NCBI RefSeq assembly: GCF_030144855.1
Contig: NC_082711.1
Coordinates: 104,098,001-104,162,000 of the forward strand
DNA from: Hypanus sabinus
Taxonomy: Eukaryota
Length of the DNA stretch: 64,000 nt
Direction: 5' to 3'
Shown: piece by piece, positions 32,161 through 58,859 of the stretch
Numbering within the stretch: position 1 is the first letter of the stretch
How the letters are laid out: every line of letters starts with the position of its first letter
Position numbers and translations under genes: made by a program
Notes under the pieces: generated by a model
The model's input: only the letters and a program-made list of their open reading frames with translations
What the model was told of the DNA's origin: nothing
The model's database searches: none

Positions 32161-32253
32161 TCACAACGGGTGGATCATTTGAGGGGACCTAGGAGACTTG
32201 ATGGTGTCATACATGGTGGGAGAAATCTCTATCGTCTCCTCTTGTCTGTGAAC
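32161..32253 (-). CDS. Gene B terminal exon with ITSM
   Basis: Acceptor tgtgctttctctccag|G at 32254/32253. The phase-0 frame reads VHRQEETIEISPTMYDTIKSPRSPQMIHPL*; TMYDTI fits TxYxxI/V; phase matches exon 53923-53836. Confidence 0.75.
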   Translation of the reverse strand, partial: VHRQEETIEISPTMYDTIKSPRSPQMIHPL

Positions 32254-32584
32254 CTGGAGAGAAAGCACAGAATTCAGAGACAGGAGATGCAATCGTGGAT
32301 ACGGTAAATGTAGGTGGGAAGACACAAGACCATTTTCTCAATCTGTAAATTCTGCAGATACCCTCCTGCCTCAGCACTACATACCCCTCCACCAACATAT
32401 TATGCACACATTTTGCCTCAAAGCCATCAGTTTTGTGATCAGAACCATTGACATACAACATGAAAAGTCCCCATCACCAACCCCTATGGAACACCACTAG
32501 TCACTGGCAGACAAACAGACCAGGTCCCCTTTATTCCCACTCTTTGTCTCCTGCCAGTCAGCCAATCTTCTGTCCATACTCAAG

Positions 32585-33125
32585 AAAATCTGTAAATGCT
32601 GGAAATCCAAGCAACACACACAAATTACTGGAGGAAGTCAAATGGCCAGGCAGCATCTATGTTATAGTCTCCGACTGTGACCCTTCATCAGGACTGGAAT
32701 AAAAGATGAGAAAGAAGGTGGGAGAGTTGGGGAGGAAGAAGTACAATGTGGTAAGTGATAGGTGAAACCCGGAGAGGGGAGGAGTGAAATAGAGAGCTGG
32801 GAAGTGGATTGGTGAAAGAAATAAAGGGCTGGAGAAGGGGAAACTTGATAGGAGAGACTGGAAGACTGTGGAAGAAAGGATGGGGAGGAGCATCAGAGGG
32901 CAGGTAAGGAGATAAAGTTAGAGAGGGAATTGTGAAAGGGGGAGGCAAGTAACAAAAGTTAGAGAAATTGATTGTCATGCCATCAAGTTGGAGGCTACCC
33001 AGACAGAATATAAGGTGTTGCTCCTCCAACCTGAGTGTGGCCTCAGTGTGGAAACAGAGGGTCCATGAACTGGCATCTCAGAATGGAAATGGGAAGTAGA
33101 AATGACATGGGTGGCCACCGGAAGA
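32585..33125 (-). mobile_element. Penelope-like element 3' fragment
   Basis: ORF 32688-33029 gives MEEQHLIFCLGSLQLDGMTINFSNF; degenerate ctgatga-agggtc core at ~32670-32692. Confidence 0.75.
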
Positions 33126-33289
33126 TCTCTCTTTTCTCTCGGCCAGCTCTCTCTCATTCCTCTGTCATACCCATTGTCCTACTGTACTACTAATAAACTT
33201 CACTTTAGTTTCTCCTTCTCAAATCGTGGGAGGAATCTATCAAATCATCATCACTGTTTACCTTAAGTTCCCTTATGAAATCTGATCAA

Positions 33290-34059
33290 ATGCCAGCGAC
33301 TGGGTGTGATGGAACAGTGTACTCAAATGACTGGGTGTGTGAGTGACAGTCTACCCAGTTAAGGGGTATGTGGGGGGACAGTGTACCCCAGTGACTGAGT
33401 GTGTATGTCTGTGGGAGGGAGGGGGTGTTCTGTGCACCCCAGTGACTGGGTGCATGGGTGGTCAGTGTACCCCACTCTCCCCACCGTTGACTGGATGTGT
33501 GGGGAAGACAGCTTATCCTGGTGACTAGGTGCCTTGGGGGATGGTGTGTCCCAGTGACTGGGTGTGTGAGTGACAGTGTACCCAGATAAGGGGTGTGTAG
33601 GGGGACAGCATACCCCGGTGACTGGCTGTGAGTGTGGGGAGGGGGGAACAGTATACCCCAGTGACTGGGTGTGTGAGTGACAGTGCAACCCCAGTGACTT
33701 GGTGTGCGGGGCAGTGTACCCCAGTGATTGGGTGTGTATGTGGACAGTGTACCCCAGTGACTGTGTGTGCAGAGGAGAGTGTACTCCCGTGAATGGGTGT
33801 GGGGGCTGTATCCCAGTGACTCTGTGTGTGTGCGTTGGGGAGGGAGAGTGGTGTACCCCATTGTCTGTGTGTGGGAGGGAATGTACCCCTGTAACTGTGT
33901 ATTGTGAAGGGAGGTGGTGTGCCCCAGTGACTGGGTGTGGGGGGAGAATGTACCCTGGTGACTAGGTGTGTGCGTGTGAAGAGGGACAGTGTACCCCAGT
34001 GACTGTGTGTGTGCGTCGCGGGACAGTCTTCCCCAGTGACTGGGTGCCTGGGGGGACGG
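33290..34059. repeat. G-rich satellite (ccccagtgactgggtgtgtggggggacagtgta-like units)
   Basis: About 20 degenerate ~33-40-bp units. Confidence 0.9.
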
Positions 34060-34440
34060 TGTGACCCTATGAAACACTCTGGTTCTGTCGACTGTGTAAG
34101 TCTAGGGAAGAAAATCTCCTGCCTCACCAAACATGGGAGATAGAAACACAAGCCCCTCAGAACCCCGTTTGTGTGGATGTTGCGTGAATGCGTTATCCTG
34201 TTACAAATGACCACAAAATAACAGACAGTACACCACATACAATTAAACAATTTAGCTTTATAATTCTTAATTTAACTACAGGGTTAATAAAAACAGCAAG
34301 CTCATAAAGGGCCCATTTTAACAAAACAGTCTAATGTGCACAAGTTGGAGCTCACAGTTTCCCCTTCTTCGATCCTCCTTCGATCTCCCCAGGCTTCGTC
34401 AACTCCTGGCCCCACTCCATGTTCATTCCTATAACCTCTC
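34060..34440. mobile_element. LTR-like segment, left part of an LTR split by L1
   Basis: Starts TG; shares aaagggccc...gtctaat.tgcaca.gttggagctca with 59140-59200; probably resumes at 51693-51886. Confidence 0.5.
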
Positions 34441-36382
34441 TTTCTCAATCTTTATTATTAAGTTTCAAATAGATAAACATAATAATGATAATGATACAAA
34501 GAGATTACATTAATAACGGTTAACATATACAGAAACAGACTCTGAGTAACATATGTAATCTAAGCCTCCCAATCTCTTAAGAACCGAACATGAAAAAGAC
34601 TCAAAACTATTTTATACAGAAAAAAAGTCCCGCTAAACTGAAAAAAATAAAAACAAAACAAAACAAAAGCTGGGCTATCGTGTTTCATAGGTTAAAATCA
34701 TGATTTGTCATTAACTCCGCTCCTCTATACACAAACAAAAAGTTATTGAGAAGGATTCGGAAAAGGTCAGCTTACATCAAATGAAAATGTTGAATAAATG
34801 GCCTCCAAGTTTCTTTCAAATTTAACCGAAGGGTCGATAGTGCCACTCCTGATTTTTTTCTAAGTTTAAACATGTTATAGTTCGGGAAAACGATTGAAAT
34901 GTTGTAGGGGGTTTAGAATCTTTCCATTTAAATAAAATGGATCTTCTGGTTATTAATGTAACAAATTTAATCGAAAGGCAAGCTGAAGGGGATAATTGAC
35001 TAGAGTCCATCACTGGTAATCCAAAAATTGCAGTGATAGGATGAGGTTGTAGATCAATACACAAAACTGCTGAAATAATATCAAAAATGGCTTTCCAATA
35101 TTTTTCCAAAAGAGGACAAGACCAGAACATATGTGTCAAGGAGGCTACCTCAGACTTACTTTGTACGTCTGTCACAGACAGGATTTATTTGGCAATAAAA
35201 ACAAGATAACTTACCCTTGGACATATGGGCACAATGAACCACTTTAAACCGTATCAAAGCATGTCTAGCACACGTTGAAGAAGTGTTAACTAGTTGGAGA
35301 AATTTCTCCCATTTCTCTGTGGATAAAGATACCTGAAGTTCTCTTTCCAATTCATTCTTAATTTTATCAGATGTACCTAGATGTATTTTCATAATCAGAT
35401 CATAAATAATTGCTATTAAACTCTTCTGATAAGGGTTTAAACCTAAAAAATTTCTGTAATTTCAGTTCGATGTGATATCGGAAAAGTAGGTAAAATGAAA
35501 TTCAGGGAGTTTCTAATCTGTAAATATCTGGAAAAAATGTGATCTAGGCAAATTATATTTATTAGACAACTGTTCAAAAGATATAAGACAGTTATCCATG
35601 AATAAATCACGAAAACATATTATTCCCTTCGTTTACCATAAAAGAAAAGCTTGATCAGTTCTGAATGGTCGGAAGAATAAATTAGATATAATAGGACTTG
35701 ATAAGATAAATTTATTCAATCCAAAAAATTTACAAAATTGAAACCACATTCGTATTATATGTTTAGTTATTGAATTAGTCATTAGTTTATTCAGTTTAGT
35801 AAGTGCAAAGGGAAGTGAGGCCCCTAAAATAGAAGCCAATAAGAACACTTGTACAGACTCACACTCGAGGTTCACCCATTGTGCACATTGAATTTCATCC
35901 AGATCTTGTGTCCAGAACATTATATATCAAGTATTAAGAGCCCAATAATAGAATCTTAAATTTGGCATTGCCAAACTGCCATCCTTTTTTAATTTCTGTA
36001 AATATTTCTTACTTAACCTAGGATTTTTTTTATTCTGACATACATATAAAGAAATTTTAGAATCAATAGTATCAAAAAAGGATTTAGAAATGAAGATTGG
36101 TACCACCTGAAATAGATACAGAAATTCAGGTAAAATAATCATCTTAATACCATTAATTCTACCAATCAATGATAAGGACAAAGGGGGGCCATTTAGTAAG
36201 CAATTGTTTAACATGAGCAATTAAGGGAAAAAAGTTAACTTTAAATAGATCCTTATGTTTCTTAGTAATTTTAACACCCAAATAAGTAAAATAATCAGTA
36301 ACCAGTCTAAGTGATAATTGTCTATGGACTGGAACTTGCATATTTAATGGGAAAAGCTCATCTTATTAAGATTCAATTTATA

Positions 36383-39300
36383 GGAGGGCATCGCATTATG
36401 ACATAGGATCAAGACGTTGGAAATCCAGCTCCCTTGTAAAAAGTAATGAAATAGGGTTTAAATGAAGAAGAGTTAACAAATACCTACTAGAAACTATTTA
36501 TAAGCAACTCAGGATTATTTTTAGATATGGCTCCTAAACCGAAACAGAAGAAGGCTACTACTTCGAAGACTGTGCAAATCGGCGGGGAAAAAGACCTAAC
36601 TGTCTTGGCGAAGCCTCATACTCAAGTTGGATCTCCTCCCAGTGAGGGGCATGACACTTCTGATGATGCAGGACAGGAAGTTACAGCAATGTCAGCGATC
36701 TCTAAGAAGAAATGGCAAGAACAATGCATGCGCGAAGAAACAAGTAAGCATGAATAGATATTAACAAAACTACAAATCCCAACTATGGCTGAAAGTGAAT
36801 CGGAAGTGGAGTCAGACTCTTTGGGAAACACAGATGAAGAAGAAGAGGAAAAGAAGGAGGAGATTAAAGGAGACATAAGAGATATCCTGATATATATGAT
36901 GAATGAATTAAAAGCTATAAGAACAGATATAAGAAGGATGCAGATTACACTCAATAACGTGGTGGAAAAACAAAAGAAGATGGATAATAAAGTTAAAGAG
37001 ATGGAAGTAAAAATGGAAGAAAACACCGAAAGAATAGATAAGATAGAAGACAATAATCTTGCCTGGACAATAGAAAGAAAACGGATGTTGGAAAAAATAA
37101 ATGCGCTTGAAAACTCTAGTAGACAAAATAATATTAAAATTGTTGGTCTTATGGAAGGTACAGAGGGAGAAAATCCAATAAAATACTTTCAAGAATGGAT
37201 TCTGAAGATTTTGGAAATGAAAGAAGGAAGCCAAGTATTTGAAATTGAAGGAGCACACAGAGCTTTAAGACCAAAACCTCAACAAGATCAAAATCCAAGA
37301 TCAATTTTGATAAAATGCTTAAGGTACCAAGATAAAGAAATTATCTTGAAGGCAGCTACTCAAGGTGCTAAAAAGAGAAATGGGCCATTGATGATAGAAG
37401 GGAAAAGAGTTTTTTTTATCCAGACATAAGTTACGATCTTCTGAAGAGGCGGAAGGAATTTAATCCAGTGAAAAAATGTTTATAGGAAAAGGGCTATAAA
37501 TTTTTATTGAGCTACCCAGCATAATTCATAATTTTCCTGGATAATGAAGAAAGAAGATTTTTCGTTGACTACTGGAAAGTGGAGAAATTTGTACAAGAAC
37601 TACCTGATAATCACGAGGAGTAAAGAATTATAGAAATGAAGTGGACTAAAGATGAAGACTGAAATAAGGTTGGACTTGACGGACATTTATAAGGGAAAAA
37701 AGTTTGAGGAGTATTAATTGGGAGTAGAGACATTAATTATTTTCTTTTTTTTCCTTCACTAATATATTTTATTTTTTTTGCGGGGGAGCTGGAGGAGCTC
37801 CTGATTGATGGCTGCGAGTTTCACGTGTACAATCATGGTGATTGCCATGTCCCGTAAAATGGGGGGGTAATGTTGTGTTCTTTTTATTCGCAACATTAGT
37901 GGGGGAGGGTATTTTGTTTTTTTTTCTTATATATTAGTTACCTTTCTTCTATTTTTCTTCTTTTTTGCCTGGATGGTTGGGCAGAGACTCATAGCAACAT
38001 GGAGAATTTTAAAGAGTTCCCAAGGTATTATGAATGATTAATTTACCTAATTTTTTAAGTTTTAAAGTTAATGGACTTAATGGACCTGTGAAAAGAAAAA
38101 GAGTTTGAACATATATTAAAAAAATGAAAGGAGATATAGCTTTTCTACAAGAAACACATTTAACAGAAACAGAATATAAGAAATTAAAGAGAGATTGGGT
38201 TGGAAATGTCATTGCAGCTTCATTTAATTCAAAATCGAGAGGAGTTGCAATTTTGGTTAATAAAACTTTACCAATTAAAATACAAAATGTAGTAATTGGT
38301 TCTGTGGGGAGATATGTGATTATACATTGTCAAATTTTTTCAGAATTATGGACTGTTATGAACATTTATGCACCAAATGAAAATGATGCAAAATTCATAC
38401 AAGAAGTTTTTTTGAACTTGGCTGATGCACATGATAAAATATTAATAGGTGGAGACTTTAATTTTTGTTTAGATCCATTTTCGGATCGGTCAACTAAAGT
38501 TGCTACAAAATCAAAGGTAATAAAACTAACTTTATCATTAATGAAAGATTTAAACCTGATTGATGTATGGAGAAAAATTAATCCAAGAGAAGGAGATTAT
38601 TCATTTTATTCAAATAGACATAAAACTTACTCAAGGATTGATTTTTTTATTGTCAAAAAATATTCAGGATAGAGTGAAAAGTGGGGAATATAAAGCAAGA
38701 ATACTGTCAGATCATTCCCCTTTGATAATGACAATGATAATGATGGATAAGGAGGAATGGATCTATAGATGGAGATTTAATTCAATTTTATTAAAATGTC
38801 AAGATTTTTGTGATTTTATGAAAAAACAGATTCAATTTTTTTGATACAAATTTACATTCTGTTGATAAAATTGTATTATGGGATGCGATGAAAGCATACT
38901 TAAGGGGTCAGATTACAAGTTATACATCTAAAATTATGAAGGAATACATGGCAGAAATAGATCAATTGGAGAAAGATATCATAAAGTTAGAAAAAGAGTC
39001 TCAAAGATATATGACAGAAGAAAAATGAAGACAATTTGTTAATAAAAAATTACAGTATAATACACTCCAGACATCGTACAGAAAAATTAAGTATGCGAAC
39101 TAAACAGAAATATTATGAATTAGGTGAAAGATCACATAAGATTCTTGCTTGGCAGCTGAAAACAGAACAGGCTTCTAAAACAATAAATGCAATTTGAACA
39201 AGTGTAAATAAGGTTACTTATAAACCTTTAGAAATTAATGAAACTTTAAAAAAAATTATGGTGAACTATATCAATCAGAATCACAAAATAAGATTGCTGA

Positions 39301-42039
39301 GATAGATAAATTTTTATCACAAATAACCCTTCCAAAATTAAATTTGGAAGAACAGAAAGGATTAGATATGCCCTTTACATTAAAAGAGGCCGAAGAAGCT
39401 TTAGGATCACTTCAGTGTAATAAATCCCCAAGAGAAGATGGTTTTCCTCCTGAATTTTATAAAAAAAATTAAAGATTTATTAATTCCTCCTTTTATGGAA
39501 TTAATATATCAAGTGGAAAGAATGCATAAACTCCCACAATCTTTTTTAACAGTGATCATAACTGTATTGCCAAAAAAGACAGAGATTCTTTAAAACCAAC
39601 ATCATATAGGTCTATTTCTTTGTTGAATACAGATTATAAAATAATAGCAAACATTTTATCTAATAGAATATCTAAATATTTACCAAAATTAATACATAGG
39701 GATCAAATAGGTTTTATTAAAAATAATCAATGGATAATATAACCCAGTTACCTAGTATAATTCATTTGGCACAAAAAAGAAAGGAAATGAGTGTGGCAGT
39801 TGCTTTGGATGCAGAGAAAGCATTTGATAGATTGGAATGGGGTTTTTTATTTAAGGCATTGGAAAAATATGAGTAAGGAAAATCTTTTATACAATGGATT
39901 AAAACCTTAAATACTAATCCTCAAGCTAAAGTAGTTACAAATGGTCAGATTTCAACACAATTTTGCTTAACGAGGTCAACTAGAAAGGTTGCCCATTATC
40001 ACCTACTTTATTTGTATTGGCAATAGAACCATTAGCTGAATTAATTAGAACAGATTCAGACATCTCAGGGGCTTTAGAATTAATCAAGAAGAATATGAGA
40101 TTAATTTATTTGCTGCTGATGATTTGATTTATTTAACAAACCCATTGCAATCTTTGCAAAGATTATCTTTTAGATTGGAAGAATATGGGAAAGTATCAGG
40201 GTATAAAGTAAATTGGGATAAAAGTGACATTTTACCCCTTACCGAAGGAAATTATAATCAATGTCAATTAGTAACTCAATTTCGATGGTCAATAAATGGG
40301 ATAAAATATTTAGGTATTAGAGTTGATAATGATGTAAAAAATTTATATAAACAAAATTATTTGCCGTTATTAAAAAAAAATAAAAGAGGATCTTGATAAA
40401 TGGATGATGTTACCAATAACATTAATAGGTAGAGTTAATGCTGTAAAAATGAATATATTTCCTAGATTGCAATATTTATTCCAAACTTTACCAATACAAT
40501 TACCTCAGAAGTTTTTTTCAAGAACTGAATAAATATGTAAGGAAATTTCTTTGGAAAGGAAAGATATCAAGAATATCATTGGAAAAATTGACATGTAAAT
40601 TTGATTTAGGAATGTTACAACTTCCAAACTTTAATGAATTGTTATAAAGCAAATCAACTTAGATATATTGCGTCTTTTTTTGATGAAGAGAAACCGGCAT
40701 GGATTAGAATAGAATTAGATAAGATAGGAGAAAACATACCAGAAGATTTTATACATAAATGGGAATCCAAATGGATATGGGAAAAAAAAGGATCTCCTAT
40801 ATTAAGACACTTGATTGATTTATGGAATAAGGTAAATATGGACGATGAGATAAAGAAATCTTTATTAGCAAAAAGAACTTTAATTCAAAATAGGCTTATT
40901 CCTTTTACAATGGATAATAAACTTTTACATAATTGGTTCCAAAAAGGGATTAAATAAATAGGTGATTGTTTTGAAGGAGGTATATTGATGTCATTTGATC
41001 AATTAAAAAATAAATATAAAATATCAAACAACACTCTTTTCTGTTATTTTCAATTAAAGGCTTATTTACAAGAAAAGCTGGGTCAAACAATGTTGATGCC
41101 AAAACCTAGTGAAATAGAAATATTAATTCAAAAAGGAAAAATTAAAAAAATTACATCTTGTATGTACAATTTGATTCAAAATCAGACAATTAAATCAGGA
41201 ATTCATAAATCAAGACAAAAATGGGAATCTGATTTGAATATTAAAATTGATGGAAAAAGCTGGTCAAGATTATGTTCTGATAGTATGATAAATACAATAA
41301 ATGTTCAACTTATATTAGTACAATATAATTTTTTACATCAATTATATATGACACCACAGAAAATAAATATATTAAATTCAAATATGTCTGACCAATGTTT
41401 TCGATGTAATCAAGAAATTTGTACTTTTTTACATTCTACTTGGTCTTGTTTTAAAATTCAATCATTTTGGATAAATCTAAGACTTTTATTGGAACAAATT
41501 ACTGGAGTACAACTCCCACATAGTCTAATATTATTTTTATTAGGAGACATTGAAGGGACAATACCAAAACTTAATTTGATTAAGTATCAGAAAAAAATTA
41601 TTAAAATAGCATAGGCAGTAGCCAAAAGAGTTATCGCAATTACTTGGAAATCTGATTTATATTTAACTATGGATTGTTGGAATAATGAAATATGTAGTTG
41701 TATTCAACTTAAAAAAATTACATACAATCTAAGAAATGAATATGATATATTTTTGAAAATTTGGCTTCCATACCTAAACAAGATAGGATTAAATAGGTCC
41801 TTTGAAGATAAAATGATAAAGTAATTGAGGAAAGTAAAAATAAATATTAAAATTATTTTGAACTCCGTGGAGCATGTGGAGATCCTTCGATATCCAGGCA
41901 ATCTTTCTCTTCTTTCTTTCTTTTTTTTTCTTTCTTTAGACAAGGGTTGGGGGGGAGGGTTAATATTATTTTTCTCTTTCTTACTATTTTATCATTACAT
42001 TTATTCTTTGTAATTTTCTGAAAATTTAATAAATAAAAA
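36383..42039 (+). mobile_element. Full-length L1-clade LINE with a 15-bp TSD; ORFs disrupted
   Basis: TSD AAGATTCAATTTATA at 36368-36382 and 42040-42054; ORF1 (coiled coil, RQNNIKIVGL, HRALRPKP); ORF2 EN (FLQETHL, NIYAPN, GGDFN, YSRIDFF), RT and C-terminal CFRC..H..WSC; tail aataaataaaaaa. Confidence 0.95.
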
Positions 42040-44465
42040 AAGATTCAATTTATAACCTGAAAAACTACAAAACTGAGCAAGTAGTGATATTATTGCAGGG
42101 ATGGATTTCTCTGGGTTAGAGATATGGAGTAACAGATCATCTGCATATAGTGTTACCTTATGTGCCCCATTCCCACAAATATACCAAATATATTGGGTAA
42201 ATCACAAAGAGCGAATTCCAAGGGCTCCAAGGCAATATCAACTAGTAAAGGACTTAAAGGACAGCCCTGTCGAGTACCTTGAAAAAGCCTGAAAAAGGCA
42301 AATCTCTGATTATTGGTAAATACAGAAGCCAAAGGTGTATGATATATCAATTTAATCCAAGATATGAATTTTGGGCTAAAATTAAATTTCTCAAGCATGT
42401 ATTCCCATTCAACTCTATCAAACGCCTTCTCCGCTTCAAGCAAAATAACACATTCTGGAGTTTTAGGTGAAGAAGTATATATAATATTCATTAACCTTCT
42501 AACATTAAAATGATTTTAATCAATTCTGTCTGGTCATCAGAGACAATTTGTGGCAATACATTTTCCAATCAATTTGCCAATATTTTGGAAAAGATTTTGG
42601 AGTCCACATTCAACCAGGATATAGGTCTATATGATGCACATTCAGTGGGGTCTTTATCTTTTTAAGGAATTAAAGAAATAGTTTCTTCATAAAAGGATTG
42701 TGGTAATTTACCTACAAATAAAGCATCCTAAAGATTCCAAAAAGAAAGTAGATTTGAAAAACATTTTTAAAATTCTACTGTTTACCCATCCAAACCAAGT
42801 ACTTTACCAGAATTTATCAAAGAAATTGCTTTCTTTATTTCTTCGTCCATGATGGGTGCATCTAATGCTAAAGGTTCATTAAGTGGTAGTTTTGGAATAT
42901 TCAATTTCCTTAAAAGTTCATGCATTATGGTAGAATCATCAGGAAATTCTGATTGGTATAAAGAGGTATAGAATTCTTGAAAAGATTTATTAATTTTGTC
43001 ATGATCAACTGCCAAAATACCATCCCATTTATGAACATTAATAATCTGACATTTAGCTGAAGCAACTTTCAATTGGTTGTCTAGTAATTTACCTGATTTA
43101 TCACCATATACTTAAAAATGACACCTAGTTTTCAGTAATTGATTTTCAGTCGGGGATGTTAATAACAAACTGTGTTGCATCTGAAGTTCAACTCTCTTTT
43201 TATAAAGCTGCGGATTAGGAGGAGCAGAATATTTTTTATCAATTTCTTTAATCTTATCAACCAATGTACATATTTTATTATTAATTTGTTTCGTCAATCC
43301 AGCAGAATATGAAATAATTTGCCCATGGATGTATACTTTAAAGGTATCCTATAATATACCACTTGAAATCTCTTCTGTAAAGTTAGTTGAAAAGAAAAAG
43401 GCAATCTGTTGTTTAATAAAGTTAACAAAGTTTATGTCCAGAAGCAGAGTAGAATTGAACCGCCATTGTCTAGCGCTAAAAGTTACATCAGTTAATTTGA
43501 TTGATAGTTTCAAGGGCGCGTGATCGGAAACTGTGATTGCATCTTACTCACAGGCAGTAACAGATGGAACTAATTGAGAGTCGATAAAAAAGTATTCAAT
43601 TCTAGAGTAATTATGATATACATGAGAAAAGAATGAAAACTCTTTTTTGTTATGATTTAAAAACATCCAAATTTCTAAAATTCCGGAGTCAACTAAAAAC
43701 AAATTAATAAAAATAGTGAATTTGTTTGGAAGTACCTGATTACATGCAGACCTGTCCATCGAGAGATTCAGGCAACAGTGAAAATCTCCGCTCATTATCA
43801 ACGTATATTTATTTAGATTAGGAAGAGATGCAAATAGATCTTTAAAGAATTCAAGATAGTCAACATTTGGTGCACAGATATTAACCATAACACCTTTTTG
43901 GTTATAAAATAAACCAATAATTAATAGAAATCTACCATTCAGGTCTGAAATTCTTTCATAGTGAACAAATGCAATCGAGGAGTCTATAAAAATAGAAACC
44001 CTTTTCCCCTTAGCCTGTGAGTTGGAGTGAAATTGTTGATCTTTCCAAAACCTAAAAAAACACTGTTAATCCTCCTTCCTCACATGAGTTTCCTGGGCAA
44101 AGATCATCTGAGCATTTAATCTATGAAAAACTTGAAAAATCTTCTTCTATTTAATCGGATGATTCAAATGATTCATATTCCATTAGACAAAGTTAATAAT
44201 ATTATCCATTTTATTAGAAAAAAACATATGTTAGATAAAGGGTTAACCTTACTGCATAGGAAGCTCATCAGTCAGGAAGAGGGGAAAAGGTTTAAAGGGG
44301 AACCGGATGTTACGACAATTCAGACACATTTGCAGTTTGAGATCAGCCCAGATTGAAAAAACTAAACTAAAAATAGCCCCACGTTTACAAAACATTTTGA
44401 AAGGTGAGATCTTGAAAAGTGAAACAGAATACAATCTTATTAATATTTCAGGGGGAAAAAATCAA

Positions 44466-46320
44466 TCACCAAATCTCAAGAAAGAGATTAGAAAAGCTAA
44501 AAGAAGATACGAGGTTGGTTTGGCAAACAAGGTGAAAGTAAATCCGAAAGGTTTCTACAGTTATATTAAAAGCAAGAGGATAGTGAGGGATAAAATTGGC
44601 CCCTTAGAGAATCAGAGTGGTCAGCTATGTGTGGAGCCAAGGGAGATAGGAGAGATTTTGAATGATTTCTTCTCTTCGGTATTCACTAAGGAGAAGGATG
44701 TTGAATTGTGTAAGGTGTGGGAAACAAGTAAGGAAGTTATGGAACCTATGACAATTAAAGAGGTGGAAGTACTGGTGCTTTTAAGAAATTTAAAAGTGGA
44801 TAAATCTCCGGGTCCTGACAGGATATTCCCCAGGACCTTGAGGGAAGTTTGTGTAGAAATAGCAGGAGCTCTGACGGAGATCTTTAAGATGTCATTAGAT
44901 ACGGGGATTGTGCCGGAGGATTGGCGTATTGCTCTTGTGGTTCCATTGTTTAAAAAGGGTTCTAGAAGTAAGCCTAGCAATTATAGACCTGTCAGTTTGA
45001 CATCAGTGGTGGGTAAATTAATGGAAAGTATTCTTAGAGATAGTATTAATAATTATCTGGATAGACAGGATCTGATTAGGAGTAGCCAGCATGGATTTGT
45101 GCGTGGAAGGTCATGTTTGACAAACCTTATTAAATTTTTTGAAGAAGTTACGAGGAATGTTGACGAGGGTAAGGCAGTGGATGTAGTCTAAATGGACTTC
45201 AGCAAGGCCTTTGACAAAGTTCCACATGGAAGGTTAGTTAAGAAGGTTCAGTCGTTAGGTATTAATGCTGGAGTAATAAAATGGATTCAACACTGGCTAG
45301 ATGGGAGATGCCAGAGAGTAGTAGTGGATAATTGTTTATCGGGATGGAGGCCAGTGACTAGCAGGGTGCCTCAGGGATCTGTTTTGGGCCCAATGTTGTT
45401 TGTAATATACATAAATGATCTGGATGATGAGGTGGTAAATTGGATTAGTAAATATGCCGATGATACTAAGGTGGGAGGTGTTGTGGATAATGAGGTGGGT
45501 TTTCAAAGCTTGCAGGGAGATTTATGCCGGTTAGAAGAATGGGCTGAACGTTGCCAGATGGAGTTTAATGCTGAGAAGTGTGAGGTTCTACATTTTGGCA
45601 GGAATAATTCAAATAGAACATACAGGGTAAATGGTAGGGCATTGAGGAATGCAGAGGAACAGAGAGATCTAGGAATAACAGTGCATAGTTCCCTGAAGGT
45701 GGAGTCTCATGTAGATAGGGTGGTGAAGAAGGCTTTTGGAATGCTGGCCTTTATAAATCAAAGCATTGAGTACAGAAGTTGGGATGTTCTGGTCACCAAA
45801 TTATAGGAAAGATATCAATAAATAAGAGAGAGTGCAGAGACGATTTACTAGGATGTTACCTGGGTTTCAGCACTTAAGTTACAGAGAAAGGTTGAACAAG
45901 TTAGGTCTCTATTCATTGGAGCATAGAAGGTTGAGGGGGGATTTGATCGAGGTATTTAAAATTTTGAGAGGGATAGATAGAGTTGACGTGAATAGGCTGT
46001 TTCCATTGAGAGTAGGGGAGATTCAAACAAGAGGACATGGTTTGAGAGTTAGGGGGCAGAAGTTTAAGGGAAACACGAGGGGGTATTTCTTTACTCAGAG
46101 AGTGATAGCTGTGTGGAATGAGCTTCCTGTAGAAGTAGTAGAGGCCAGTTCAGTTGTGTCATTTAAGGTAAAATTGGATAGGTATATGGACAGGAAAGGA
46201 GTGGAGGGTTATGGGCTGAGTGCGGGTAGGTGGGACTAGGTGAGATTAAGAGTTCGGCACGGACTAGGAGGGCTGAGATGGCCTGTTTCCGTGCTGTGAT
46301 TGCTATATGGTTATATGGTT
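44466..46320 (+). mobile_element. 5'-truncated CR1 LINE
   Basis: KSPGPD, NYRPVSLTS, QHGF..GRSCLTNL, MDFSKAFD, VPQGSVLGP, YADDTK; (TATGGT)n tail; candidate TSD AAATCAA at 44459-44465 and 46321-46327. Confidence 0.93.
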
Positions 46321-46884
46321 AAATCAAATTCTTAATTATTTTCAAAAACAAACAATTGAAAATAATAAAATAAAATAATAAAGGAAAAAAGAGGAACTTT
46401 AACATAGAAGCATGATAAACATCCATACTCCAAAACAGAGTACGAGTGTTATCAAACCAAGGGCAAAAATCCTCAAACTTCAGAAAGTCCAGATCTATGA
46501 ACTGGTTATCAACTTATAAACCAAATGATTACAGACACAAAGAGACAGTAAATTTATTGACAGCTGAGATCAAACATTGATCCTCAAGGAATTGATAAGC
46601 TTCTTCCATGGATTTAAACCATTTACGTGATTTATCAGGCAGAACAACCCTTATACGAGCTGGAAATAGCAGAGCTGGTTGAAACTTTCTTTGATAAAGC
46701 TCAGATATCATCGGTTTAAAAAGCGATCTTTCTCGCATTACCTCAGGACAGTGGTCTTCAACCAGATGAAACTTGAGGTCTCCATGTTCAATAACCCCTT
46801 TCCGATGGGCAATTTGAATTAAATGCTCCTCGATATGCACATAGTAGAATCAGAGTATAACAGGTTGAGGCTTCAACTCTTTAG

Positions 46885-49800
46885 ACAATAGGTGCAGGTC
46901 TAGGCCATTTGGCCCTTCGAGCCAGCACCGCCATTCACTGTGATCATGGCTGATCATACACAATCAGAACCCCATTCCTGCCTTCTCCCCATATCCCTTG
47001 ACTCCATTTTCTTTAAGAGATCTATCTAACTTTTTCTTGAAATCATCCAGAGAATTGGCCTCCACTGCCTTCTAAGGCAGAGCATTCCATAGATCCACAA
47101 CTCTCTGGGTGAAAAAGTTTTTCCTCAACTCTGTTCTAAGTGGCCTACCCCTTATTCTTAAACTGTGGCCTCTGGTTCTGGACTCCACCAACATCGGGAA
47201 CATGTTTACTGTCTCTAGAGTGCCCAATCCCTTAATAATCATATATGTTTCAATCAGATCCCCACTCATCCTTCTAAATTCCAGTGTATACAAGCCCAGT
47301 CGCTCCAATCTTTCAACATATGACGGTCCCGCCATTCTGGGAATTAACATTGTGAACCTGTGCTGCACTCCCTCAATAGCAAGAATGTCCTTCCTCAAAT
47401 TTGGAGACCAAAACTGCACACAATACTCCAGGTGTGGTTTCACCAGGGCCCTGTACAACTGCAGAAGGACCTCTTTGCTCCTATACTCAACTGCCCTTGT
47501 TATGAAGGCCAACATGCCATTAGATTTCTTCACTGCCTGCTGTACCTGCAGTGACTGATGAACAAGGACACCTAGATCTCGTTGTACTTCCCCTTTTCCT
47601 AACTTGACACCATTCAGATAGTAATCTGCCTCCTGTTCTTGCTACCAAAGTGGATAACCTCACATTTTTCCACATTAAACTGCATCTGCCATGCATCTGC
47701 CCACTCACCCAACCTGTCCAAGTCACCCTGCATTCTCCTAACATCCTCCTCATATTTCACACTGCCACCCAGCTTTGTGTCATCTGCAAATTTGATACTG
47801 TTACTTGTAATCCCTTCATCTAAATCATTAATGTATATTGTAAATAGCTGCAGTTTCAGCACGGAGCTATGTGGTACCCCCACTAGTCACTGCCTGCCAT
47901 TCTGAAAAGGACCCGTTAATCCCTACTCTTAGTTTCCTATCTGCCAACCAATTTTCTATCCATGTTAGTACCCTGCCCCCAATACCATGTGCCTTAATGT
48001 TGCCCACTAGTCTCCTACATGGGAACTTATCAAAGGCTTTCTGAAAATCCAGGTACACTAAATTTACTGGCTCTCCCTTGTCCATAGTTACATCCTCAAA
48101 AATTTCCAGAAGATTAGTCAAGCATGATTTCCCCTTTGTAAATCCATGCTGACTCAGACCAATCCTGTTACTGCTATCCAAATGTGCCACTATTTCATCT
48201 TTTATAATTGACTCCAGCATCTTCCTCAGTACTGATGTCAGGCTAACTGGTGTATAATTCCCTGTTTTCTCTCTCCCTCCTTTCTTAAAAAGTGGGATAA
48301 CATTAGCTACCCTTCAATCCTCAGGAACTGATCCTGAATCTATAGAACATTAGAAAATGATTACCAATGCGTCCACGATTTCTAGAGCCACCTCCTTAAG
48401 TACATTGGGATGCAGACCATCAGGCCCTAGGGATTTATCAGTCTTCAGTCCCATGAGTCTACCCAACACCATTCTCTGCCTAATGTGAATTTCCTTCAGT
48501 TCCTCCATTACTCTAGGTCCTCTGGCCACTATTACATCTGTGAGATTGTCTGTGTCTTCCCTAGTGAAGGCAGATCCAAAGTATCAGTTCAACTTGTCTG
48601 CCATTTCCTTATTCCCCTAATAAATTCACCTGTTTCTGCCTTCAAGGGCCCAACTTTGGTCTTAACTAATTTTTTCCTCTTCACATACCTAAAGAAGCTC
48701 TTACTATCCTCCTTTATATTCTTGACTAGCTTACCTTCATACCTTACCTTTTCTCCCCGTATTACCTCTTTAGTAATCTTCTGTTGCTCTTTAAAAGTTT
48801 CCAAATCCTCTGGCTTCTAGTTCATCTTTGTTATGTTATTCTTCTCTTTTATTTTTATACTGTCCTTGACTTCCCTTGTCAGCCACGGTCGCCCCCTACC
48901 CCCCTTAGAATCTTTCTTCCTCTTTGGAATGAACTGATCCTGCACCTTCTGAATTATTCCCAGAAATACCTGCCATTGTTGTTCCACTGTCATCCCTGCT
49001 AGGGTATCCTTCCAGTCTACTTCGGTTAGTTCCTCCCTCATGGCTCCATAATCCCCTTTGTTCAACTGTAATACTGACACTTCTGATTTTCCCTTCTCCC
49101 TCTCAAATTGTAGATCAAAACTTATCATATTATGGTCACTACCTCCTAATGGCTCCTTTACCTCGAGTTCCCTTATCAAATCCAGTTCATTACAAAATTC
49201 TAAATCCAGAGTTGCCTTCTCCCTGGTAGGCTCCAGTACAAGCTGCTCTAAGAATCCATCTCGGAGGCACTCCACAAACTCCCTTTCTTGGGGTCCAGTA
49301 CCAACCTGATTTTCCCAGTTTACCTGCATGTTGAAATCCCCCATTACAGCCATAGCATTACCTTTGCGACATGTTGATTTTAGCTCTTGATTCAACTTGC
49401 ACCCTATATCCAGGTTACTATTTGGGGCCTGTAGATAACTCCCATTAGGGTTGTTTTGCCCTTACAATTTCTCAGTTCTATCCATACTGGCTCTACATCT
49501 CCTGATTCTATGTCACCCCTTGCAAGGGACTGAATATCATTCCTCACCAACAGAGCCACCCCACCCCCTCTGCTCACCTGTCTGTCCTTTTGATAGGATG
49601 TATATCAAAAGAATATCCATTTCCCAGCCCTGGTCCTCTTGCAGCCATGTCTCTGTTATTCCTACAACATCATACTTGCCAACTTCCAACTGAGCCTCAA
49701 GCTCATCCACTTTATTTCTTATACTTCATGCATTCATATATAATACTTTTAATCCATTACTCCCCTCACTTCTCACATTGATGCCTATTGCACTTGGCCA

Positions 49801-51044
49801 TACTCTCCGATCCCTTCCTGAGCTTTTTGCCCCGTTAATTCTGTTGTCTTTCTTATCTTTTCTTATTCTCTCTTTCCCTCTAACTCCATCCTTATGTTTC
49901 CAGTTTGTCTCCTCCCTCGCACTTATTAGTTTAAACATACCCATGTAGCAGTGACAAACCTGCTTGCCAGAATGCTGGTCCCCCTCCTGTTAAGATGCAA
50001 CCCGTCCCTTTTGTACAATTCATCCTTACCCCAGAACAGATCCCAGTGGTCTAAGAATCTAAAACCCTGCTTGCTGCACCAGCTCCTCAGCCACACGTTG
50101 AGATCCCATATCTCCCTGTTCCTGCCCTCACCAGCACGAGGAACTGGAAGCAAACCGGAGAATACCACACTGGAGGTCCTGCTTTTCAGCCCTCTGCCAA
50201 GTTCTCTGAAGTCACACTGCAGAATTTCTTTCCTCTTCTTCCCGACATCACTTCTGCCGACATGCACTACCATTTCCGGCTGTTCACCTTCACCCTTGAG
50301 GATGCCCTGCAATCGGTCCGTGATGTCCTGGATCCTGGCTTCATGGAGGCAACACACCAACCTTAAATCCTGCCTGTTGCCACAGAAACCCCTTTCTGTA
50401 CCTCTCACTATGGAGTCCCCTACTACCACAGCTCTGCCTGATGTCTGTCTCTTCGGCTTTGCTTCAGCGCCAATTTTTGACTCGCAGACCTGTCCACCTT
50501 TCAGACTGGCAGTGTCTTCTGTCTCGACAGCTTCCAAGAGGGTGGACGTGTTTTCAAGAGGCACATCTCCCGGAGTCTTCTGTACTTCAAGAATCTATCC
50601 CTTCCTCATCGTCAACCCCCTTCTCTCTTCCAGTATCTTCAGTGTAACGATCTCACTGTAGGTCCTGTCCAGAAATCTCTCATTTTCACGGATGAACCTG
50701 AGGTCATCCAGTTGCCTCTCCAGTGCCCCAACACAGTCCTTCAGGAGATGAACCTGGACACACGTTTCACAGCTGTAGCAACCGGAGGCACCATCAGTGT
50801 CGCTGACCTCCCACATCAGGCAAGCATCACACTGAATCAGATTACCTGTCATCTCTTCACCACCTCTCACCCTCTCCAACTGTGGCGTAGTCTCCTCACT
50901 CAGCCTCCTCGCTGAAGATTCTCGAGCCAAAGACTCATACTTTTCTCACAAGGCACTTCCCTCGACAAGGCCGCTCCCCGAGTCAAAGCCTCAAAGCTCC
51001 ACTCCTTTACTGGCCCATTCACACACTGCCCACTTTCCACTGCT
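46885..51044 (-). mobile_element. Near full-length CR1 LINE with zinc-finger/esterase ORF1
   Basis: ORF1 C..C...C..C (50595-50930) and SGNH-type VVGDSIVRG..VHVG..DGLHLN (49926-50564); ORF2 EN (MGDFN, SDHN) and RT (DFQKAFD, FADDTK); candidate TSD TTTAG at 46880-46884 and 51045-51049. Confidence 0.93.
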
Positions 51045-51692
51045 TTTAGGAGGTTTTGGTCTTAAAGCACGGTGGACACGATCAAGTATAAGAGTAGTAG
51101 AGAGAGCTTCAGAGCCAAACACAACCACTGAAAATTGAGAAAAGAATTTAGTAAGGTCACCACTCTCAATGTCTTCATGGAGTCCTATTATTCACAGGTT
51201 CTGTCTACGAGTGCGACTTTCCAGGTCAATAATCTTGAGTTTATACTGTTCCAGTGTTTGAGTGGTCAAAGTTAATTTCTTTTCCAATCTGCCCTCTCTC
51301 TGTCTTCCAGCTTCATCGAATTCAGAAATTTGCCGCTGTTGTTTTTCACTCTCCGGCTTAAGTGCTTCCAGTCTACTTTCGATCTCCTTTAACAATACTT
51401 CCAAAGTAGAAATTTTTTTATTGAATTTATCATCCAGGAGCTTTGACATAGCTTCCAAATTGAGTTGAGTCTGTTTAGGCTGTTTAGAATCTCCTTCTCT
51501 CCTTCCAGTTCCATTACCGGCCTCCTTGCCTTTGGCTGATGCCTTTTGCCCTCTGGTATTCATTTCCAGCGATTAAAAAATCAAAGTTCAGGCACATAAA
51601 AGTGTTATAAACACTTTAATATAGGTGGTGAAAGGGTGGTTAAAAAGATTGAGAAATGAACGCAGCAAAGCCAAAATATGACTTCCTCCATC

Positions 51693-51886
51693 TAGTGCCC
51701 CAAGAGAACTCCCCTACAACCTCTCCTCTCTGGCATCTTCTCTATTCATCTCCCACCAAACAAAAGACTCTCACTTGTCAGGCACACAACACAAAAAACA
51801 CACTCCCTTCGTTGCACGGTTCACATTCCAAAGCACCCATAACCATATCTCATATCTCTAACCATAACCTAAACACTGCTTCTACA
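51693..51886. mobile_element. Probable right part of the LTR-like segment begun at 34060
   Basis: Lies between the L1 5' end and the resumed satellite; ends in CA; no TSD found. Confidence 0.35.
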
Positions 51887-53470
51887 GTTAATGGGTGTGT
51901 GGACAGTGTACACAGTTAATCAGTGTGTCAGGGACATTGTTCCCAGTGACTGTATGTGCAGACATTGTACCCCAGTAAATGGGTGTGAGGGAAGGGGTTA
52001 GTGTACCCCAGTCTTGGGGATGTGTGGGGTGGACAGTGCAAACCTGGTGACTGGGTGTGGGGCGGGGACATTGAACCCCCTGGTGACCTGTTGTAGGGGC
52101 ACAGTGCACCGCAGTCACTGTATGTGGGGGGATGTTACGTACCCCGTAACCGGTTAAAAAGAACCACCAGAAATAGATACATGTGGAGTCTGAGCCTTCC
52201 ATTATTAACTCTATTTTATTAATAACTACATGAATAAAGTAATATAAAACAGGATAAGGTGAACAGATTATCAGAGTATATGCATATATAAGTGAGTAAA
52301 TAAAGTTCCCAAGCTTCCCAGCTCAGGTGTTTGGGTGAAACTGTCTTACGGTGGTACAGTGAGTAATCAGCTCAGTTCTGGAATTTGATTTGAGTAGAGT
52401 TAGAGAGAGAGAGAGAGAGAGAGTTGGTTTGTCTTCCCAAGGCCGATGCCGATGCCGATCCTCCACATCGTCCTCCCTCTCCCGAAACTTATTTAAAGTC
52501 ACCAATTTGGACCACAGAAAGAGGAATGCCGGTTTTCCACAGTGAGCTGTCAACCCAGGCCAGGGTTAACCACACCGATAGCTCCCCACTGATCACTCCT
52601 TTGTCCACACTGTGAGCAAAAACCCCATCTTTGTCGTGGGCACACACTCACCAGCGTCCTCCTTGCCTCTGGTGTCATGTGTCTCCTGTGTGTCTGATTA
52701 AAAAGTCAACTGACCTTGCATATATCTCACAAGTGTGGAACACGAGCTGTCCATCATATAGCTCCTCCTTCCAGTTTCCAAGGCAACTCACATACTTTCT
52801 CGCTCTCCCTGCTGCTGAAATAGCACACCAACTGTTCAGTCCCCCTCTCTCTCTTTTAAAGGAACAGTCCATTTTAGAATAATCCTTTAGATCTCGTCAC
52901 AGGGGACAGTGTATGCCCCGGCACTAGGTGTGTGTGTATTGGGGACAGTGAACCCCAATCACTGGGTGTGTGGTAAGGGGGGATTGACAATGTATCTCCA
53001 GTGACCAGGTGTGCAGGGGGAATGGTGTACCCCAGTGCGGGGGGGGCGGTGAACCCCCTGGTGATCAGGTGTGTGGGGGGGTGACAGTGTACCCCAGTGA
53101 CCGGATGCGTGGACAAGTATACCAAGTTAATGGGTGTGTAGGGAGACAGCATACCCAAGTGACTGTGCATGCAGACACAGTACCCCAGTGACTGAACAAT
53201 TGGGGAGAGAACAGTGTACCCCAGTGACTGTGTGTGGGGGGGGGGAGGTGTTCAGTGTACCCCAGTGGCTGGGTGTGTGTGCCAGTGTGGGGGGCACAGT
53301 GTACCCTCCCGGTGACCGGGTGTGTGGATTGGACATTGTACGTCCCCATGGCCAGTGTGGGGTTCGGACAGTGTACCCCAGTGACCGGGTGTGTGGGGAC
53401 AGTGTACCCCAGTGACCAGGTGTGTGGGGACAGTGTACCCCAGTGACCGGGTTTGTGGGGACAGTGTACC
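51887..53470. repeat. Continuation of the G-rich satellite at 33290-34059
   Basis: Same ccagtgactgggtgtgtggggacagtgtacc units, interrupted by the solo LTR at 52133-52901. Confidence 0.9.
52133..52901 (-). mobile_element. Solo LTR with a 5-bp TSD
   Basis: TGTTACG...GTCACA flanked by GGGGA at 52128-52132 and 52902-52906; its start matches the reverse complement of the LTR end at 61142. Confidence 0.85.
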
Positions 53471-53835
53471 CCTGTATATGAGTGGAAATAGAATCTTGCT
53501 GCTTTGATTGAACCAATATGAAGGTCACTGTTCAGTTTGAGGGGCAATCTCTTTGTTTATTGCCCGGTGCCTTTGCTTATGTTGCTCAGCTCTGTGGAAT
53601 CTTTGACAGAACTGTAAGGACGCTCAGCTTTGGCTCTCGATGAGTCTGTGATTGTCCTTTGTGCCAGAACATCCAGTGGTCTGTCAGGGTGGTGAGGATG
53701 GTCTGAGGAGATTACACTAGTACCCTGACCCGAGGTAATGTGGCTGTCCTCCAGACTGTGAGAATGGTCCCAGGGTATTGAAGAGTTCAGTCTGCAGTTC
53801 CACTCCCCTCACTGGGGTAATACATCCCCTCTTAC

Positions 53836-53923
53836 CATCTCATTTCCTTTGAGAGGCTGCCGGTTGCTGCCGAACTCTTTGTTGCCTGAAATTCTGCGCA
53901 AATTGAGCTGTTGGGAAGTGGGT
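53836..53923 (-). CDS. Gene B cytoplasmic exon
   Basis: Acceptor cctcttcctctgctccacag|A and donor ATG|gtaaga; 88 nt; phase 2 in and phase 0 out reads PTSQQLNLRRISGNKEFGSNRQPLKGNEM with no stop. Confidence 0.75.
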
Positions 53924-54318
53924 CTGTGGAGCAGAGGAAGAGGCAATGAGAACCTGCCCCCACCCCAATGCTTCCTTCATAACCCAATAACTGTCACCCC
54001 TCCACACCACCTCCACTGCTAAGCCCCCATCTCTCCTGAATCCCTCCCTCAACTCTCCTTTCCATCCCACCCACAATGCAGGATTTCCTGCTCCCTCCAA
54101 CCTCCTTATTCCTTCCTCCAACCATCCACCTCCTCCCCCTCCCACCTGCACCCCAATTTCTGTCACCCACACACTCTGACACCAACTACATCCCTTCTCC
54201 CACCTTTTGTCCCGATACATGAGGGTCAGGATGTGAGCCACCTGCCTATACCCCTGTCCTGCTCCCCCTGCCCGGACTTGGCTGGACCTCCGGTCCTAAG
54301 GGTAGGACTGTTGCGTAC

Positions 54319-54451
54319 TTGCCTGCAGACCCTCTCTCTCCTGTTGCACTCCTTCTGAGGGTGAAATATAGCGAGAAAATAAGTCCCACAATGACACCAA
54401 CGATGTTGATGCTTGCACTGAGTGCAGAGATGCTCTTTAGAAAATTGTCAC
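54319..54451 (-). CDS. Gene B transmembrane exon
   Basis: Acceptor ttttctcctctcctggtgtag|G (phase 1); DNFLKS-ISALSASINIVGVIVGLIFSLYFTL-RRSATGERGSAG; donor CAA|gtacgc (phase 2), with an alternative CAG|gcaagt 4 nt upstream. Confidence 0.82.
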
Positions 54452-54564
54452 CTACACCAGGAGAGGAGAAAAGCTTCTGTGAATAACTCCGTCCTCTCAC
54501 TTCCAATGGTGGGAGATCGATGGATCGATTCCATCCTCCTCCAATTGAAGAAAAAAACCATTCA

Positions 54565-55060
54565 CCCCAGTGCTGATTCCTACCACCCACACATCACTCC
54601 TCTCCACTCGGTTACTCCTCGTCACAACACACATCACTCCTCTTCATTATCCCTCATCACTCCCCTCACCTCCATTACCCCTCATCACTCCTCACGTCAC
54701 TCTTATCCATTATCCCACATCACTCCCTTCTCCTCCATTACCCCTCATCACTCCTCACATCACTCCTCTCCATTATCCCTCATCACTCCCCTTACCTCCA
54801 TTACCCCTAATCACTCTTCACATCACTGAAGCTCCCCTGTATTACCGCTCATTACTCATCACATCACTCCCCTCCCCTCCATTATCCCTCACTCCTATCC
54901 CCTTCATTACCCCTCATTACTCCTCACATCACTGAACCTCTCCTCCATTACCACACATTACTCCTCACACCACTCCCCTCATCACTCCTTACTGCCCTCC
55001 CCACACTCAGCCACATTCTACCTCTCCATACATCAGTAACCCATCTCCTTGCTCACCCAC
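54565..55060. repeat. Low-complexity tandem repeat (catcactcctc/ccattatccc)
   Basis: Repeated short CT-rich units. Confidence 0.85.
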
Positions 55061-55138
55061 TATTAAAGTGTTTCTTCTGTTAAAATCAGCTCCTGTGTCA
55101 ATCATGTGCACTGGTATTCACTGTATGTCCATAAGGAA

Positions 55139-55164
55139 ACACACACACACACACACACACACAC
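55139..55164. repeat. (AC)13 microsatellite
   Basis: Read directly. Confidence 0.95.
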
Positions 55165-55189
55165 ATTCCCTTGACTCCGCGAGGCTGTA

Positions 55190-56100: not shown

Positions 56101-56129
56101 CGCCATCTTGCAGTGCATGGAGTAGTCGC

Positions 56130-57790: not shown

Positions 57791-57799
57791 TCATTCAGC

Positions 57800-58250: not shown

Positions 58251-58283
58251 ATGACATCTTTGCCAGCCTTCTGATCAAACTGA

Positions 58284-58500
58284 TTTCCTTAATACTTTAA
58301 CAGTGATCATACATGATTGTAGCTTTCCCTAATACTGTAACAGTGATCATACATGATCGTAGCTTTCCCTAATACTGTAACAGTGATCATGCATGATCAT
58401 AGCTTTCCCTAATACTGTAACAGTGATCATACATGATTGTAGCTTTCCCTAATACTGTAACAGTGATCATACATGATCGTAGCTTTCCCTAATACTTTAA
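58284..58500. repeat. 40-bp tandem repeat, ~5.4 copies, each with a near-palindrome
   Basis: agctttccctaatact recurs at 58321, 58361, 58401, 58441 and 58481. Confidence 0.95.
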
Positions 58501-58777: not shown

Positions 58778-58859
58778 AATCAATTCTTAGAGCAACCACA
58801 CAGTATTCAACTAATTCAATCTAATACAATACCACCAAATTGGAACCCTTTTTCAGTGG

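Follow-up and report, generated by a model that had tools for sequence, protein, structure and literature searches.

The minus strand of a 64,000-nucleotide (nt) stretch of the stingray Hypanus sabinus genome carries the 3' end of a gene annotated in RefSeq as "HEPACAM family member 2-like" (XP_059828665/666/667). The stretch, here called the window, is NCBI RefSeq assembly GCF_030144855.1, contig NC_082711.1, positions 104,098,001 to 104,162,000 of the forward strand, and positions are counted from its first letter. Judging from its sequence, the gene is on balance best explained as a member of the CD2/SLAM family of immunoglobulin (Ig) receptors whose cytoplasmic tail is in decay and which probably makes mainly a tyrosine-free receptor. 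An earlier note on this DNA, made from the letters alone, had proposed a hidden signaling receptor, in which three exons splice across a 21.6-kb transposon-filled intron to give a transmembrane (TM) segment and a tail bearing an ITSM (immunoreceptor tyrosine-based switch motif). The gene, its TM exon (exon 1), and exon 2 were already in RefSeq; what is new is the unannotated exon 3, which carries the ITSM.

Structure of the 3' end

When we read the minus strand again from the coordinates, the three exons (Table 1) joined without stops and gave exactly the peptide of the earlier note, with its motif TMYDTI. The phases 1>2, 2>0, and 0>stop hold with the GT donor of exon 1. Exon 1, which is homologous to the TM exon of the sawfish Pristis, follows the acceptor ...ctggtgtag/GTGAC at 54451 and ends in the donor GCAA/GTACGC after 54319 (slashes mark splice junctions). 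Exon 2 lies between the acceptor ctccacag/ACCC at 53923 and the donor GAGATG/gtaaga at 53836, and exon 3 runs from the acceptor ctttctctccag/GTT (ctctccag/GTT) at 32253 to a TGA stop at 32163-32161. The joined frame reads DNFLKSISALSASINIVGVIVGLIFSLYFTL... and continues into a 72-amino-acid (aa) tail, in which TMYDTI, the second ITSM (ITSM2), is encoded by exon 3 at 32217-32200 on the minus strand. The intron between exons 2 and 3 measures 21,582 nt. Three things had been missed: a canonical GC donor 4 nt upstream of the GT (exon end, 54323), a frameshift in exon 2, and the existing RefSeq annotation of the TM exon and exon 2.

Gene identity and family

An exhaustive phmmer search with the V domain of a neighboring gene (see below) returned 150 family proteins. 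In a local BLAST search of this set, the part of the tail encoded by exons 1 and 2 was identical to residues 416-489 of the 496 residues of P0005, which is XP_059828667, "HEPACAM family member 2-like isoform X3 [Hypanus sabinus]", and the two exons were likewise 100% identical to XP_059828665. Isoform X1 (P0152) has 591 aa and isoform X2 (P0157) has 582 aa. Thus, the description of the tail as hidden holds for exon 3 but not for the TM exon and exon 2, both of which are in RefSeq X1 and X3, while the GC frame is that of X2.

The gene product consists of a leader, a V domain without cysteines, three to four near-identical C2 domains, the TM segment, and the tail, and the ectodomain upstream of the TM segment is therefore Ig-like. 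In P0152, Pfam identified a V-set domain (E, 5e-10), Receptor_2B4 (PF11465; 22.8 bits, cutoff 21), and four Ig_3/I-set domains. P0161, a paralog whose V domain is 93% identical to that of the gene studied here, aligned over both domains with the SLAMF6 structure 2if7 (E, 4e-8) and further matched structures of CD2, CD58, SLAMF5, and CD48, although generic Ig matches (DCC, NCAM) scored alike on the C2 domain alone. Close relatives are named "CD48 antigen-like" and "SLAM family member 8-like" by NCBI, and P0161 and P0162 are products of Hypanus family genes on the same chromosome. These domain and structure matches place the gene in the CD2/SLAM family, in keeping with the earlier proposal of a SLAM-family receptor gene in a cartilaginous fish.

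The coding sequence of the gene spans about 48 kb, so the Ig exons lie beyond window position 64000. In keeping with this, neither an Ig-motif regular expression nor tblastn with family V and C2 domains found an Ig exon in 54452-64000, where the earlier note had also found none, and the open reading frames (ORFs) in that interval were transposable element fragments or had no Pfam match. One of the fragments in this intron upstream of the TM exon is an RT_RNaseH fragment of a long terminal repeat-type retroelement (62482-62847, plus strand; Pfam E, 3.6e-6).

Exon 3 as the terminal ITSM exon of the family

Paralogs with complete tails were found in Hemitrygon (P0160), Hypanus (P0161 and P0162), Pristis (P0163), and Mobula (P0010 and P0159). 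They read ...EGSRPE-DPSPCTIYSEVQAINRTATNRQPPEGNEM-VHSQEETMEITPTVYDTVKAPRSPQMTHPL and contain two ITSMs (consensus, TxYxxV/I/L; PMC3958483), with a canonical junction between exons 2 and 3 of ..NRQPPEGNEM/VHSQEE..TVYDTV. Of the 30 C-terminal residues of P0160, 23 recur in exon 3 of the window, which has the same stop position, the two C termini being PRSPQMIHPL and PRSPQMTHPL, respectively. Identity was 64 to 77% to three dasyatid paralogs and 52 to 67% to Pristis and Mobula over shorter alignments. We also compared the DNA with the sawfish Pristis gene (L001) and the skate Rhinoraja gene (L002). Both aligned with the window over exon 3 and its polypyrimidine/AG flank and into the first part of the 3' untranslated region, and the match to the skate exon had a blastn E value of 7e-13. 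The spliced tail matched Mobula P0010 with an E value of 1.6e-12 in the local family set.

It is important to note that a six-frame translation of the window yields 26 instances of the motif TxYxx[IV] and that, from motif counts, we estimated that approximately 0.3 to 0.4 such motifs would be expected by chance among plausible phase-0 terminal exons. The ITSM motif alone is not beyond chance; the homology is far beyond it. Judging from these alignments, exon 3 is the family's genuine terminal ITSM exon. It is also this gene's own original last exon. The sawfish gene was colinear with window 54375-53111 from its TM exon as far as ~0.7 kb into intron 2, the minisatellite of the last intron is split (see below), and a search of the window for another gene that might own exon 3 found no second TM exon or exon 2.

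The intactness of exon 3 is no sign of selection, because even intron sequence is ~80% identical between stingray and sawfish. The conservation of intron 1 (mean column identity to the sawfish, 81%) was considered as a sign of function and dropped: with 80% identity, the 5' part of intron 2 is no less conserved, and the conservation of intron 1 thus reflects slow divergence.

A tandem GC/GT donor after the TM exon

The TM exon ends in a tandem donor of the GYNNGY form. Splicing at the GC (54322-54321) leaves phase 1, and splicing at the GT (54318-54317), the donor chosen in the earlier note, lies 4 nt further on and leaves phase 2. The sequence CAG/GCAAGT is spliced at the GC in Pristis (L001 34648-34655) and in Rhinoraja (L002 14197-14204), whose proteins read ..RSA-D-TVP.. 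and ..VPA-D-PGP.. across the junction; the proteins P0163, P0028, P0157, P0155, and P0158 read across the GC junction. Read against the standard 5' splice-site consensus, the GC register matched at eight of nine positions and the GT register at six of nine. These comparisons indicate that the GC is the ancestral and canonical donor, belonging to a GC-AG intron that skate, sawfish, and stingray have all kept. The RefSeq models use both sites: X1 and X3 use the GT, and X2 and the two Hemitrygon models (P0155 and P0158) use the GC. GYNNGY tandem donors are the commonest form of alternative 5' splice site, and their use is mostly noise (PMC4267661).

Read-through of the TM-exon donor (54246-54318, minus strand) gives GKY[AP]T...SPGRGSR.GV before a stop, with the same length in the window and in the Hypanus and Mobula models that end in this way (P0153, P0154, and P0156). 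This likeness probably reflects slow divergence, and the read-through could be a short-tail isoform.

Loss of ITSM1 and of the reading frame

Exon 2 of the canonical paralogs reads DPSPCTIYSEVQ..NRQPPEGNEM, whereas exon 2 of the gene reads DPLPNSSICAEFQATKSSAATGSLSKEMRW in the GC frame. The first half of this reading aligns with the family (DPSPCTIYSEVQAINRTA), with the tyrosine of the first ITSM (ITSM1) changed to cysteine and its valine changed to phenylalanine. The resulting relic, SICAEF (canonical, TIYSEV), lies at 53906-53889, with the cysteine codon at 53900-53898, on the minus strand. The second half is out of frame in the GC reading, and the family's NRQPPEGNEM appears only in the GT frame. 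Exon 2 has 88 nt versus 86 nt for the canonical dasyatid exon, as inferred from a 29-residue protein segment, for a net gain of 2 nt. The GT donor adds 4 nt, so that the two shifts together restore the frame for distal exon 2 and exon 3. If the GC splice were followed by exon 3, the product would read FTDKRRR and stop (tail, ..WFTDKRRR); if it were followed by read-through of the exon 2 donor, W and a TAA stop (53834-53832) would end a tyrosine-free tail, ..KEMRW.

The RefSeq models recovered with this type of tail number five (three Hypanus isoforms and two from Hemitrygon); all end by read-through of the exon 2 donor, and none (0/5) joins exon 3. TMYDTI, which only the GT donor brings into frame, is missing from all five. 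Hemitrygon akajei P0158 (V + 4 C2, 604 aa) and P0155 share the shifted exon 2 and the tyrosine-to-cysteine change, which makes the shift older than the divergence of Hypanus and Hemitrygon. Below exon 2 is the hexamer AATAAA, a candidate premature poly(A) signal that was possibly gained newly in this gene. Word-indexed protein searches (85 to 868 aa) found no transcript-derived ORFs in either direction, as they returned NCBI models only and no ORFs from Logan or TSA. Exact lookups gave no record for P0005 or P0157 and nothing but the genome record for P0152.

The swollen last intron

The ancestral intron between exons 2 and 3 is short, at ~240 nt in the skate and ~850 nt in the sawfish. The earlier note had described the intron of the window as transposon filled, and Pfam bore this out with reverse transcriptase (RT), endonuclease (EN), and esterase-type ORF fragments in an insert rich in long interspersed nuclear elements (LINEs). 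In blastn, neither the sawfish nor the skate intron aligned colinearly with this insert. On both sides of it lie blocks of a minisatellite with the 31-nt unit GGACAGTGTACCCCAGTGACCGGGTGTGTGG. The same minisatellite fills the rest of the sawfish intron (L001 35556-35910) and is present as one or two units in the skate; it is an old resident of the last intron of this SLAM-like family across batoids and is here expanded and split. Because the split minisatellite flanks the insert and the region is colinear with the sawfish, the LINE-rich DNA sits inside one ancestral intron. The long minus-strand ORFs at 33289-34101 and 53068-53556 are spurious and come from translation of the minisatellite. Introns of tens of kilobases are normal in the SLAM-like family; for instance, the P0161 gene spans 86 kb.

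Neighboring gene and other features of the window

A second family gene (gene B) lies in the window on the same strand, so the family is tandemly clustered here. The identity of its V exon is 89 to 92% to the P0001 V repeats and 90% to the V domain of the HEPACAM family member 2-like gene. Approximately 360 nt upstream of its leader is a 45-bp tandem repeat (8782-9711; 20.7 copies, 92% matches) that is open in several frames. Nested 37/110/147-bp tandem repeats occupy 24368-25047, between exon 3 and the next gene, with 3.2 copies of the 147-bp unit (98% matches).

Table 1. Coordinates of the features in the window, in the order of the minus strand
Feature	Position	Strand	Basis or remarks
Exon 1, TM + juxtamembrane, phase-1 entry	54319..54451	-	100% identical to XP_059828667 (P0005) residues 416-459
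Exon 1 end options	54323 (canonical GC donor) or 54319 (GT donor)	-	
GYNNGY tandem donor GCAAGT	54317..54322	-	Sequence GCAG/GCAA/GTACGC
Intron 1	53924..54318	-	395 nt from GT donor, 399 nt from GC donor; G-rich; colinear with sawfish intron 1
Exon 2, cytoplasmic, 88 nt	53836..53923	-	100% identical to P0005 residues 460-488
Exon-2 donor read-through, coding sequence end in all RefSeq isoforms of the gene	53809..53835	-	VRGDVLPQ and stop (GT frame)
AATAAA, candidate premature poly(A) signal	53556..53561	-	275 nt below exon-2 donor; sawfish has AATCAA there
Minisatellite, proximal block, 31-nt unit	52900..53475	-	TRF; blastn with Pristis and Rhinoraja intron 2
Minisatellite, further block below exon 2	51885-52131		TRF; blastn
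LINE-rich insert within former intron	34068..51884		Pfam RVT_1, Exo_endo_phos, Lipase_GDSL_2
Esterase-type ORF	49929-50594	-	Pfam
EN fragment	48820-49461	-	Pfam
RT fragment	44247-45803	+	Pfam
EN fragment	38109-38669	+	Pfam
Minisatellite, distal block, ~1 kb above exon 3	33290..34067	-	TRF; blastn
Exon 3, ancestral terminal coding exon with ITSM2	32161..32253	-	Absent from every RefSeq isoform of the gene
Gene B (neighboring CD2/SLAM-like gene), leader MWNCLKRVLCLNSAFVFAIFL	8419-8348	-	
Gene B, cysteine-less V exon	782-453	-	Rest of gene left of window

A probable tail in decay and its alternatives

We propose that the ancestral tail would have consisted of the TM exon (GC donor, phase 1), exon 2 with ITSM1 (TIYxEV), and exon 3 with ITSM2 (TxYDTV) and the stop. 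On this reading, four changes set the Hypanus gene apart: ITSM1 became SICAEF, exon 2 grew by a net 2 nt, LINE-rich DNA of ~20 kb was inserted into the minisatellite of the last intron, and the AATAAA arose 275 nt below the exon 2 donor. Because the canonical GC splice gives a tyrosine-free tail, most transcripts may be expected to encode a non-ITSM receptor for adhesion or ligand binding only. A single-ITSM protein would come only from transcripts that both use the minor GT donor and splice across 21.6 kb; such a transcript is possible but is probably minor or absent. Thus, the earlier proposal stands in part: the gene is a CD2/SLAM-family receptor gene and its ITSM exon is genuine, but the claim of signaling is not supported in the form given, as the GC splice puts exon 3 out of frame, the ITSM1 tyrosine is lost, and no model joins exon 3.

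Several observations weigh against a decaying tail. The exon 2 donor (ATG/GTAAGA) and the exon 3 acceptor are both strong and intact, exon 3 is undisrupted with the T, Y, and I of its ITSM all kept, and, of the three Hypanus isoforms, two are spliced at the GT, the donor that would put exon 3 in frame. Moreover, the RefSeq XP models are predictions; their read-through ends might have been completed ab initio, in which case real transcripts may splice to exon 3. A working signaling tail is therefore possible on the sequence. At its strongest, this view has the gene encode a functional SLAM-type receptor with a single ITSM, made at a meaningful level through the GT donor, the shifted exon 2, and removal of the 21.6-kb intron, which would add VHRQEETIEISPTMYDTIKSPRSPQMIHPL; phosphorylated TMYDTI is predicted to recruit SAP/EAT-2-type adaptors or SHP phosphatases. 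We consider this unlikely but not negligible. The signals at all three junctions are usable and the frame is open, the GT donor is present in X1 and X3, exon 3 is an intact family ITSM exon, the +4 shift of the donor and the +2 shift of the exon sum to an in-frame 6 nt, and paralogs splice introns of tens of kilobases. These points are countered by the lack of exon 3 from the five models in two species, by the poorer consensus match of the GT, and by the GC being the site that is conserved across skate, sawfish, and stingray. The first 19 residues of the tail would be an out-of-frame novelty, and alternative use of GYNNGY sites is mostly noise (PMC4267661). The restored frame itself is little surprise: every consensus GC donor carries such a GT, which "rescues" any -1/+2 frameshift, so that about half of all frameshifts would look rescued and the chance of a coincidence is roughly 1 in 2. 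A variant that we find improbable treats the two donors as a regulated frame switch, in which the GC would give a silent receptor and the GT with the 21.6-kb splice would give a single-ITSM receptor with the same V + 4 C2 ectodomain. The +2-nt shift common to Hypanus and Hemitrygon may then have been kept because signaling had come to depend on the choice of 5' splice site.

The opposite possibility is that the whole gene is a transcribed pseudogene or an artifact of gene modeling that would make no functional product, with its three to four near-identical C2 exons merged from tandem duplicates, a broken tail, and exon 3 as debris. The isoforms do differ in their count of near-identical C2 repeats, and the tail has its frameshift and lost tyrosine; yet the ectodomain ORF is intact, and the same V + 4 C2 + TM and tail are predicted in Hemitrygon akajei (P0158, in the 90%-identity cluster of P0152), which argues for retention since the genera split. 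We give this possibility little credence. It is far less credible still that exon 3 never belonged to this gene and is the lone survivor of a lost neighboring paralog or an import by unequal crossing-over. Family genes do lie in a tandem array here, as gene B shows, and minisatellites favor unequal exchange, but the window has no second TM exon or exon 2, and the two halves of the minisatellite lie on either side of the insert, correctly ordered and oriented.

If the tail is in decay, as we favor, the locus would be a clean, datable case of signaling loss in the expanding SLAM/CD2 clusters of batoids, marked by a tyrosine-to-cysteine change, a frameshift, a LINE-swollen intron, and a new poly(A) hexamer. 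The locus also documents a GC-AG intron that has been conserved in skates, sawfish, and stingrays alike, with a built-in GT that can reframe the tail. A tempting overreading is corrected as well: the ITSM exon is genuine, yet the gene was already annotated and its tail is eroding. Were the minor isoform regulated, the gene would hold a compact, splice-controlled on/off switch for receptor signaling, and a true frame switch would be a one-gene version of the paired signaling and nonsignaling receptors seen elsewhere in the CD2/SLAM family. Otherwise, the locus represents ordinary gene-family turnover and a small annotation gap of one unannotated relic exon.

Comparison with known systems

The closest counterparts are the canonical batoid "SLAM family member 5-like" genes (P0160, P0161, P0162, P0163, and P0010), which share the cysteine-less V domain, the C2 type, and the exon plan, in which a TM exon that ends in a GC donor is followed by exons 2 and 3. 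V domain identity among these stingray and Mobula proteins is 79 to 93%, and it is 43% to Pristis. In contrast, the gene studied here has three to four C2 repeats where they have one and a different TM type. Its ITSM1 is destroyed (TIYSEV to SICAEF), its exon 2 has the net +2-nt frameshift, its last intron measures 21.6 kb versus 0.24 to 0.85 kb in skate and sawfish, and its annotated products lack exon 3.

The mammalian SLAM receptors (SLAMF1, 3-7; PMC3958483) share the CD2/SLAM-type V-C2 ectodomain, the type I TM topology, and the tandem gene cluster, and TMYDTI fits their ITSM, TxYxxV/I/L (PMC3958483). This likeness is at the level of the family, and the ITSM of the stingray gene needs a minor donor and an unannotated splice.

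Multidomain and tail-less members of the family offer two further comparisons. Ly9/SLAMF3 has a V-C2-V-C2 ectodomain, unlike the V + 4 C2 of the stingray gene. CD48, CD58, SLAMF8, and SLAMF9 are CD2/SLAM members without a tail or without an ITSM, and the predicted GC-frame product resembles them in joining a CD2/SLAM ectodomain to a short tyrosine-free tail. Here, by contrast, the loss appears recent and is visible as a relic, with its tyrosine-to-cysteine change, frameshift, and intact but stranded ITSM exon.

Finally, GCAAGT resembles the GYNNGY tandem 5' splice sites described previously (PMC4267661) in that two GY sites lie 4 nt apart, predicted isoforms use each of them, and the choice between them shifts the frame. 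It differs in having as its upstream site a GC donor that batoids have conserved. Moreover, whereas such a shift usually destroys the frame, the downstream GT here restores an ancestral one, given the +2-nt shift that exon 2 acquired later.

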